NCBI GenBank assembly: GCA_964199315.1 | Contig: OZ116702.1 | Coordinates: forward strand, 31,620,001 to 31,684,000 | DNA length: 64,000 nucleotides | Reading direction: 5' to 3' | Source: Orbicella franksi | Lineage: Eukaryota | Shown: piece by piece, positions 60,943 to 63,506 of the stretch | Layout: every line of letters starts with the position of its first letter | Numbering within the stretch: position 1 is the first letter of the stretch | The notes under the pieces: model-generated | The model's database searches: none | What the model was told of the DNA's origin: nothing | The model's input: only the letters and a program-made list of their open reading frames with translations | Position numbers and translations under genes: made by a program

Positions 60943-61016
60943 TAAAAACTTGCTATTTATCTCCTCTTATCCAGCGTGAGCTCATGGAAAAATTGTCAAC
61001 TATTATGGAAGAGTTA

Positions 61017-63377
61017 ACAGTCCGGGATCGTTATCAGATTTGATAACCATGTGACGTCACAACATGGCGGCCATTTCAAAGACCGGGAATTTTCGTATTC
61101 ACTTCGCTTTGCTCGTTATTTGTTCGATTATACTCGGGTAATTTACCCATAATTCTATTCGATAATTACCAGAAAAGAAGGAGCCTCACGTGTTTTGAAG
61201 ATGGCGGTTGAAGACCAGCGTAAATGATGTAAAATGCTACTCGTAAAGTGAAACAGCGCTTGCAATTTTGCATCCAAACCAGGTATGTTTTTCATTCTGT
61301 CATTAGATTTAAGTTACCTGGAGATTTTTCCGAAAATCACAAAAAATATGTCGTTAATCTTCACGCCATATTCTTGGGATTTAACGTGTTTTTAGTGTTG
61401 TGCACGATCTGTGAAAAAAGTGCACGGGGGTATTTTGATTTGCGATGTGTTGTTCGTAACGGCGGCCATATTTACAGCTGTAATCGATATGTTCCTAGGT
61501 ATTGAGATGGCGGATGCTGGTACCCATAGAATCAAAATAGCAAATTTATGTCGATTTTGTGGATATAGCTTGGTCATTACATAGGGTAGGTTTATTGTTG
61601 TCGAGTTTTGCAGCATAAAATTTTCGTTCCTTTTAGGCCTGACAGACACGCAGCATTCAACTTTAAGAATTACTGGTGGCAAAATCAAGGGGTACGTAAA
61701 AGTAACTTACATAAATCATCTAAGCCCCTTCAGAAAAAATTATAGCTCTTAGTGAGTCGCTCAATTCATGGTACGGCAGTCCAGGTGGTCGGGAAACCAC
61801 TTGCGAATCTAACATTACCTGTTTATTTTCTTTTGAAGGGTTACCATGAGGTCAAAATCAAGGGGCCAGCAGGAACTCCTTTTCATGTCCTTCCTGAAAA
61901 TTGGAAACAAAGACTCGTTCGCACTTCGTTGTGTTTTGCCGGAAATTAGAGAAATACCCGAAACACTCCTAGACGTGCCACAGTCTGGTATCCAAGAGCG
62001 CTAAGAAAAATTACACTTTGAGAGAAGTTGCTGGAAGACAGATAGGCCGGGTGCAATACTTCATAAACAGGGAACTAAAACACCTTTCGGACTGCGGGAA
62101 AATCGACAATCACGTTAAAGGGTAAGTTGCCTATATTTTAGAGTCAATTTCAACAACTCGCGGTCCTGAAATATTTTCCGGAAATGCCGGCCAAACTAGG
62201 TCAGTTTTCTGGCACACCAGTCGTTATATAATGAAGCTTATTGTTGGATTTAGCGAGTGAACTATGGTACGAAAACATATTACTTGAATTATAGTTTCTT
62301 TTATATGAATCGGTCATTAAAAGCGTTTTTCCATATCACCGAATGCACAACAATAGACTACTGATCTACAACTAAAACAATTTTTTTCCGGAAATGCCAA
62401 GACTTCCAAGTTTACTGTCACATCTCACGACATAAAGTGTTGCATGTACCCATTCCACTGAACGGAGGTGTATCACGAATTAAAGTAAATATACCTGCTA
62501 TTTTTTTGTTGTTGTGCCAGAACCATATCAGGCGAGCCCACAACGACAAAGAGAACTCCAGTGCATCCAAGATGGAAACGAAATGTACAATACGGCAGAA
62601 GGGATTGAATTAGCAATCGCAGAAATGGAATTAGGCGTGGGATGGGATATGGCCATCGAGGTAAGCTATTCTATCTTCAGTATATCTGGACAGAGAGTCG
62701 ACAGAGGGAGGGTGGTGAACTGTTTCGATACAGTTATTTCCATTTCATAGTAATGAATCATAGTAGGAGATGTTTCGGTCCTAACCACGCTTCGCTCATG
62801 CAAATTGAACGAAATTCAGTTACAGCTTTCCGCTTGGAATATAGAAGCAACTTGTTCAGTGTCAATTTGTGAACTCAAGATGTATTTATTGTTAGTGTTT
62901 CGTTTATATTTTATACAGACTGTTGAACAGCCAGCTTCGCCAACTGCCAAGAAAATGAAGCCTGAGTGAAAATAGAAGCTATCATATTAGTATCAATAAA
63001 CAACGCTTTTGTGAACAGAATAACTGTTGTCTACCTTCGTGTGTTTTTACTCGGAACAAATATTATACGGTGTCTATCTGAAAATGAAACTTTTCGCTGT
63101 AGCTTTTGGAAAAAGACAGTTTTCTTCCATACATCTCTGTTTCTATTCCATGATCCAGTAACCTATTGCGAAGTAAACATACAATTACAATTAAATGAAA
63201 TTGCATTGTGATGTTGTGAAAAAAGTAACTCCTTTCATCGCAGCGCACCATCGACCGCCATATTGAATTATACACTGTTCCTACCAAATAATGTCACGTG
63301 AACGAAAACTTGCGCAGCGATTGATTAATGGTTTGTTTTGGTCGAGGTTATCAAATCTGATAACGATCCCGGACTGT
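61017..63377. mobile_element. 2.36-kb TIR element (putative non-autonomous DNA transposon with internal gene)
   Basis: 61015-61048 and 63346-63379 are exact 34-bp reverse complements (TAACAGTCCGGGATCGTTATCAGATTTGATAACC). The outer TA on each side reads as a TA target duplication. Confidence 0.88.
61201..62969 (+). pseudogene. Apparent four-exon spliced unit inside the TIR element; 5' exons disrupted, 3' exons open
   Basis: Introns: 61283-61838 (GTATGT..CTAAC..TTTTGAAG), 62122-62520 (GTAAGT..TGCCAG), 62661-62918 (GTAAGC..TATACAG). Exons 3+4 are open and end ...MAIE|TVEQPASPTAKKMKPE*. AATAAA at 62995-63000. Confidence 0.6.
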
Positions 63378-63506
63378 TACACGATACTCTCATCTGCGTT
63401 CGACTGGTCTTGGGATAAAACATGAGCAAAGCACAAAGCAGCCACTTAGGATGACAGAACTCACGTTAAACAAGTGTATCGACCTTCCGGCATCTGAGAT
63501 GCAAAT

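Follow-up and report, generated by a model that had tools for sequence, protein, structure and literature searches.

Chapaev transposons were first described in cnidarians, alongside the lancelet. Among transposons, the Chapa domain has been reported only in Chapaev, Chapaev3 and RAG1-like/TransibSU elements (PMC4411706; bioRxiv 10.64898/2026.01.24.700457). Chapaev elements carry C(2)C and H(4)H motifs, generate 3-4-bp target-site duplications (TSDs) and have "invariable" CAC..GTG termini; Chapaev3 elements make 3-bp duplications of the form TWA (PMC4079192), and CMCT elements usually have CA..TG ends and 2-5-bp TSDs (PMC12730594). Here we analyse a 64-kb stretch of the genome of the coral Orbicella franksi (GenBank assembly GCA_964199315.1, contig OZ116702.1, positions 31,620,001 to 31,684,000 of the forward strand), hereafter the window, to which all position numbers refer unless a contig is named. 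The element that we take to span 61017-63377 is very probably a 2.36-kb non-autonomous internal-deletion derivative of a ~10-kb Chapaev-like (CMC) cut-and-paste transposon family of stony corals, mobilised in trans.

The element is bounded by a 34-nt inverted repeat, whose arms at 61015-61048 and 63346-63379 are 100% complementary on comparison of the window with itself, as a preliminary description of this DNA had stated. The 32-nt core of the repeat, which begins with ACAGTCC, occurs at just two places in the 64 kb, with none expected from shuffled sequences. The element ends read ACAGT...ACTGT, with TA outside each, and a small palindrome, GTTATCA-N4-TGATAAC, lies inside each arm of the terminal inverted repeat (TIR). 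We scanned JGI/ENA metagenome contigs for the exact 32-nt terminus, and 36 coral-metagenome contigs contain it. With the window ends included, the distinct flanks number 22 on the left and 11 on the right; no contig flank equals the window's own. Interiors beside these termini are 85-99% identical to the window, and the ACAGT...ACTGT ends recur in all 36 contigs and in two further family copies, L039 and L041. The inverted repeat marks a multi-copy mobile family of stony corals, common in reef corals, and the search for other copies proposed in the preliminary description, made here in metagenome contigs, was fruitful. TIR pairs were also sought in three further relatives (L042-L044), where none was found. 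Contig starts at 61019 were considered as a sign of many flanks and rejected: the inverted repeat, at 34 bp, exceeds the 31-mer of the assembler, so that the graph is interrupted at this point in any case.

A separate observation concerns two Tara Pacific metagenome scaffolds from different samples, L041 (at 3339) and L044 (at 3548). Both hold a sister copy of the family at an identical insertion site, with the flank ...CTTCTCTTGA, so that this insertion is common to both samples; the TIR at that site differs at 2 of 32 positions.

The bases adjoining ACAGT differ among copies. We compared 33 distinct ends, made up of 22 left and 11 right flanks, with the window's own two ends counted in and duplicates removed: T stands at -3 in 26 of them (p = 2e-8) and A at -1 in 21. 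This pattern disfavours an obligatory TA duplication and favours a 3-bp target of the T-N-A type. The full-length relative L039, and L040 as well, has a perfect TAG/TAG 3-bp TSD; the TSD length of the family is read from this one complete end pair in other copies together with the flank logo. In the window, the flanks TTA and TAC have only TA in common, and a one-T slip in the T run would reconcile them with a TTA duplication. The TA on both outer sides, pointed out in the preliminary description, is indeed present at both ends, but with such variable bases and the TAG of L039 it is not the target duplication of the family. The empty-site joint 61014/63380 was not found among the RNA and contig joints listed. 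A word search of DNA runs for the left junction found 0.64-0.73 of 11 words present in several coral species, which is too coarse to tell whether the insertion is shared.

The gene of the family is best seen in a contig of 2,251 nt (L025), which runs from flank through left TIR to right TIR and is devoid of precisely 61283-61498 and 62661-62918. Lacking exactly those introns, it represents a spliced, cDNA-like version and most likely comes from a metatranscriptome. Its minus strand carries an intact 452-aa open reading frame (ORF) at 404-1762, with an ATG equivalent to window 61507. The protein begins MADA..HRIKIA.LCRFCG and finishes ...TVEQPASPT.KKMKPE, its C-terminus aligning to window exons 3-4, and it matches Pfam RAG1_imp_bd (PF12560, the RAG1 importin-binding or N-terminal region) at 2.9e-6, above the curated cut-off. 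A word-indexed search gave 34 relatives of this ORF across cnidarians, mostly ORF-sized pieces of ~370 aa, plus gene models of Desmophyllum and Nematostella. An exhaustive phmmer search against 1.8 billion representatives gave 612 matches, among which are proteins of 900-1,250 aa whose first ~400 residues align with L025 residues 5-370. The L025 protein has no catalytic core: the C-terminal exons follow its N-terminal part directly, which makes it a candidate for a truncated transposase. In this contig, splicing connects the N-terminal exon of the transposase to exon 3 without a change of frame, and exon B of the window ends in equal codon phase; these phases weakly favour exons A, B, 3 and 4 and the transposase being one gene. 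Along the L025 protein we also recognise a whole Chapa zinc finger, a KKRKR resembling a nuclear localisation signal, an acidic tract, a helical region and the first catalytic-D strand. A single-sequence AlphaFold prediction of the 452-aa ORF was uninformative, with a predicted local distance difference test score (pLDDT) of 33.

The full-length relative L039 was found via a homologous protein (P0004) that is 64% identical to the L025 ORF. Its perfect 33-nt TIRs, ACAGTCCGGCACAGTTATCAAATTTGATAACCG, lie at 9498-9530 and 19310-19342, open with ACAGTCCGG as the window TIRs do, and enclose 9,845 bp. On one strand, a large first coding exon (10001-11107) is accompanied by ORF pieces at 12566-13465, 13425-13745, 14326-14640 and 16206-16535; the pieces are collinear with long proteins, for instance with residues 487-952 of protein P0054. 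When 19 long relatives were aligned, D402, D668 and E730 proved invariant and C685 and C688 nearly so, and the alignment contains C(2)C and H(4)H motifs after the second D and a terminal LEExN..K block. Pfam recognises RAG1_imp_bd (1e-6 to 2e-11) plus DUF6589 in the long relatives, and the family profile matches the RAG1 NZD structure 21wb_A at 1.7e-10. An AlphaFold model of P0054, built on 67 sequences, is confident, with a pLDDT of 82 and a predicted template modelling score (pTM) of 0.75; the nearest named entries in AlphaFold DB come from lancelet, mussel and fungi and are uncharacterised proteins labelled RAG1 importin-binding, C2H2(-type) or DUF6589. A longer coding relative, such as the preliminary description had proposed to look for, exists in another assembly, with near-identical TIRs and a multi-exon DDE gene. 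In L039, the counterparts of window exons A and B are found some 2 kb downstream of the final exon with a match to the long transposases.

We established the anatomy of the window copy by comparison with L025, L039 and a decayed genomic copy, L037 (Table 1). The 5' end up to 61562 and the 3' exons are collinear with all three, and the large exon and the core exons are missing: the copy has the termini of a longer coding relative, collinear ends and no middle, as an internal-deletion derivative should. The subterminal region that includes the 5' untranslated region (5' UTR) holds TGACGTCA, two ATGGCGG motifs and, at 61201, an ATG that had been proposed as the gene start but opens only an upstream ORF of 8 codons. 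According to the L025 alignment, the start of the family gene is ATG 61507. It opens ~19 conserved codons (MADAGTHRIKIANLCRFCG), which supply the first of the zinc ligands in the Chapa finger; of the Chapa/RAG1 NZD-type finger found in the family, only these codons (...CRFCG) remain in the window. Homology of the large exon stops at 61562-61569, and an in-frame stop follows at 61582-61584. Gone at the breakpoint are about 1.05 kb of the large exon (about 350 codons) and all catalytic-core exons.

The exons downstream of the breakpoint are damaged as well. Exon B, open in L039, is split by two frameshifts into 61842-61901, 61903-61977 and 61985-62110, which lie in three frames. Exon 3 has a 62-nt frameshifting deletion with respect to L025 and to protein P0062, and the junction from exon B to exon 3 is in frame. 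The frameshifts and read-through stops needed in the preliminary description to join its exons are hence real lesions, as judged against L039 and L025, and the C-terminal exon with its AKKMK and AATAAA is as described there. Since all recognisable exons of the element are homologous to the family's own gene, we regard the frameshifts and stops as decay of a gene that belonged to the element, and the exons not as captured cargo. Between the TIR arms, no ORF longer than 98 codons occurs on either strand. Pfam found nothing significant in ten ORF pieces of the window; a weak RAG1_imp_bd match (E 0.17) on 61411-61584 proved to be a true lead.

Table 1 Features of the element and its flanks, in window coordinates.
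Feature	Position	Strand	Evidence and remarks
Left flank TTA	61014..61016	.	Expected 3-bp target duplication; the right flank has only TA in common (61015-61016)
Left TIR (ACAGTCCGGG...)	61017..61048	+	Identical 32-mer in 36 metagenome contigs; TIRs of L039 and L041 near-identical
Subterminal region and non-coding exon 1 (5' UTR)	61049..61282	+	Collinear with the 5' part of L025, about 95% identity
Intron 1, GT..AG	61283..61498	+	Inferred: missing from spliced contig L025, present in genomic copy L037; not among the RNA joints listed
Large transposase exon remnant	61499..61585	+	tblastn with L025 ORF residues 1-21, alignment
Deletion breakpoint zone	61563..61631	.	69 nt without any match
Exon A (...STLRITGGKIKG)	61637..61691	+	Homologous to L039 18514-18567 (tblastx, frame comparison); donor 61691/61692 RNA-supported, acceptor putative
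Intron, GT..AG	61692..61838	+	15 junction reads in X23, one X10 contig
Exon B	61839..62121	+	Homologous to L039 18724-18996
Intron, GT..AG	62122..62520	+	39 junction reads in X23, contigs in X1 and X10
Exon 3 (TISGEPTTTKRTP...)	62521..62660	+	Matches the C-terminal part of the L025 ORF
Intron, GT..AG	62661..62918	+	30 junction reads in X23, contigs in X1 and X10; missing from L025
Last exon (exon 4), tail TVEQPASPTAKKMKPE	62919..63000	+	Stop 62967-62969, AATAAA 62995-63000; ends ...AKKMKPE
3' subterminal region	63001..63345	+	Collinear with L025, L037 and eleven right-end contigs; CCGCCAT 63255-63261, CACGTG
Right TIR	63346..63377	-	Complement of the left arm
Right flank TAC	63378..63380	.	One T short of the TTA that would give a perfect 3-bp duplication

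We overlaid the region 60200-64000 with polyadenylated RNA reads (X23) and with contigs of two metatranscriptomes (X1 and X10). Three GT-AG introns on the plus strand are supported by RNA (Table 1). Two of them, 62122-62520 and 62661-62918, agree exactly with the preliminary description; its first intron, 61282/61839, has the right acceptor and the wrong donor and consists of two introns, 61283-61498 and 61692-61838, with exons 61499-~61585 and 61637-61691 between them. RNA depth is about 25-33 in exons and about 5-10 in introns. Intron-containing contigs are plentiful in X1 and X10, indicating that unspliced RNA or DNA is present too. The RNA reads agree with each other and differ from the window at about 1% of sites; at an indel reporting threshold of 10% they show no indel in the exons, so that the lesions of exons B and 3 are the same as in the window. 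The window copy is transcribed and spliced, presumably from a promoter of its own, and its transcript is probably polyadenylated. From the true start, the window-type RNA has only a 25-codon ORF, followed by the frameshifted exons. A second run of polyadenylated RNA (X21) gave coverage only on flanking high-copy repeats.

The heptamer ATGGCGG or its complement CCGCCAT occurs four times in the element (61064-61070, 61201-61207, 61507-61513 and 63255-63261) and eight times in the window, with 2.3 expected. Its copies are inverted between the two ends of the element, overlap both the ATG of the upstream ORF and the true ATG, and have a YY1-like core. The motif could be a promoter element or a subterminal repeat bound by the transposase.

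Compared with known systems, the family is closest to Chapaev and Chapaev3. It resembles them in its Chapa finger, in a DDE core that includes C(2)C and H(4)H, in its occurrence in cnidarians and, apparently, in a 3-bp T-N-A bias like the TWA of Chapaev3. It differs from them in its ACAGT...ACTGT ends, in its many introns and in its extra 3' exons (A, B, 3 and 4); the window copy, moreover, is without the catalytic core. Because the Chapa domain, both motifs and apparently the T-N-A-like target are there but the CAC termini are not, we designate the family "Chapaev-like (CMC group)" and not a proven member of Chapaev, a putative placement by sequence features. The termini, which the preliminary description could not assign, are accordingly those of a Chapa-domain CMC-type family with a probable 3-bp TNA-like target and not of Tc1/mariner. 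N-RAG-TP of Aplysia (Panchin and Moroz 2008), as outlined in PMC8355894, is likewise a mobile element with a protein resembling the N-terminal region of RAG1. RAG-like elements (ProtoRAG) and Transib have the same type of N-terminal zinc finger and a DDE core in the wider CMCT clade; we considered and rejected them, as the coral family exhibits no 5-bp TSD, no CACAGTG/CACAATG-type termini and no similarity to the RAG1 core. By its organisation, the window copy is comparable to maize Ds and dSpm and to the Drosophila P-element KP, which keep the termini and some exons of the parent, have lost the middle, are transcribed and spliced, and are mobilised in trans. Those belong to other superfamilies.

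The copy retains both 32-bp TIRs and the subterminal regions, presumed sites of transposase binding. Also left are the promoter region, the exon with the 5' UTR, the initial ~19 codons and the four exons at the 3' end; after loss of the middle, the remaining exons acquired two frameshifts and the 62-nt deletion. Thanks to its surviving promoter region and splice sites, transcription and splicing of the copy continue, yielding RNA without a meaningful ORF. The copy could move only with transposase supplied in trans by a full-length family member, as passive cargo. The N-terminal zinc finger and helical region of that transposase may recognise the common TIRs or subterminal repeats, and excision would be the work of its DDE core, as would reinsertion at a TNA-like site by a staggered cut of 3 bp that leaves a duplication. 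The TIRs, the splicing, the copy number of the family, the homology of the exons and the structure and TSD of a full-length relative are observed; mobilisation in trans, the promoter and any current activity of the window element are what we infer. What the preliminary description saw as a non-autonomous TIR element devoid of its own transposase is otherwise borne out: the catalytic core is deleted, the family is mobile, and the copy is transcribed and spliced.

Several points weigh against an internal-deletion derivative of a Chapaev-like family. The flanks of the window copy are not a clean 3-bp duplication, and the hallmark CAC..GTG termini of Chapaev are replaced by the looser CA..TG of CMCT elements, one base in. 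No full-length copy with exactly the window TIR was recovered from this genome; L039 belongs to another assembly and has only 64% protein identity, so that an active partner in this coral is hypothetical. Exons A, B, 3 and 4 could belong to the transposase or to a second gene. Finally, with a mismatch of ~1% between reads and window, the RNA may stem from sister copies or, in other individuals, from the orthologous locus.

The other explanations fit less well. The preliminary description proposed a Pack-type element, i.e., a non-autonomous TIR element with a captured intron-containing host gene or an accessory gene. Like Pack-MULE and Pack-CACTA, the window copy is TIR-bounded and non-autonomous and has an exon-intron structure; spliced exons without a transposase domain recognisable by Pfam, and 69 nt at 61563-61631 that match nothing, would suit such a capture. 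Yet all recognisable exons are homologous to exons within related TIR elements, namely the ends of the L025 ORF and exons A and B of L039, and the in-frame joint of the L025 N-terminal exon to exon 3, with exon B in equal phase, shows them behaving as the element's own gene and not as host fragments. A captured or accessory gene is therefore very improbable. Still less credible is a Tc1/mariner-type element resembling a miniature inverted-repeat transposable element (MITE) with a TA target duplication. TA does stand on both sides, and the terminus contains CAGT as do many Tc1 ends; however, TA lies beside ACAGT in only a few of the 33 distinct ends, the conserved position being the T at -3, the full-length relative is flanked by TAG/TAG, and the family protein combines a Chapa finger with a large DDE core that has the C(2)C and H(4)H motifs, unlike the DD34E of Tc1.

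It is also conceivable that the short element is retained as a regulator of its family, by a truncated transposase or a repressor RNA, in the manner of a P-element KP or Ds-type competitor. Several independent RNA libraries show steady transcription and splicing of the copy, and L025, a sister form with a deletion, has an intact ORF that covers the entire DNA-binding N-terminus but no catalytic core. Against this, the window-type RNA offers just the 25 codons from the true start and then frameshifted exons, and the reads show equal lesions; we consider a regulatory role quite improbable. The deletion derivative of a Chapaev-like family is thus the reading that we retain. On this reading, the apparent "transposon with its own spliced gene" is a textbook deletion derivative that runs the promoter and splice sites of its parent, and an annotation of the element's exons as a coral gene beside the Hox cluster would be mistaken. 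The analysis documents a young transposon family of corals with a Chapa domain, including its termini, its target preference and a full-length relative; the window copy itself brings nothing mechanistically new. A broader claim, which we judge rather unlikely, is that the family is an undescribed Chapa-domain lineage, set apart by its ACAGT termini, the many introns of its gene and a 3' module like HIRAN, that it remains active in reef corals, and that its deletion derivatives are not inert. If so, the core-less DNA-binding N-terminus of the L025 form or the spliced non-coding RNA of the window form could damp transposition or compete with it.

The HIRAN lead comes from exon B (L039:18724-18996, window 61839-62121). 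Pfam reports HIRAN for 3 of 8 members, at E about 0.05, and of 100 atlas feature neighbours of this exon 76 fall in HIRAN clusters (score 0.82); a PDB profile search for a HIRAN identity of exon B was negative. Exons A, B and 3 may tentatively be regarded as a HIRAN-like module, and such a module on or beside a transposase would be unusual, if true.

Other repeats lie within and around the family copies. In L037, a long intron of the decayed copy contains a nested fragment (8216-8662) with a MADF-domain ORF; its opposite strand has sequence typical of the N-terminus of a PIF/Harbinger transposase. Just left of the window element, a nested palindromic MITE-like repeat occupies 60744-60947, with arms 60791-60843/60847-60899 and 60744-60785/60906-60947. 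An Rfam scan of 60500-64000 detected no intronic small nucleolar RNAs or known RNAs, only a microRNA-like match inside this palindrome (MIR2275, E 0.5) that is probably due to chance. Over 60581-60961, RNA and contigs both reach depths in the thousands, which indicates a transcribed repeat family of very high copy number. Another region of very high copy number, 63629-64000, lies right of the element, where the word depth rises to about 24,000; many joints in the RNA reads go back or join opposite strands there, suggesting a short tandem or inverted repeat family with a variable arrangement of units.

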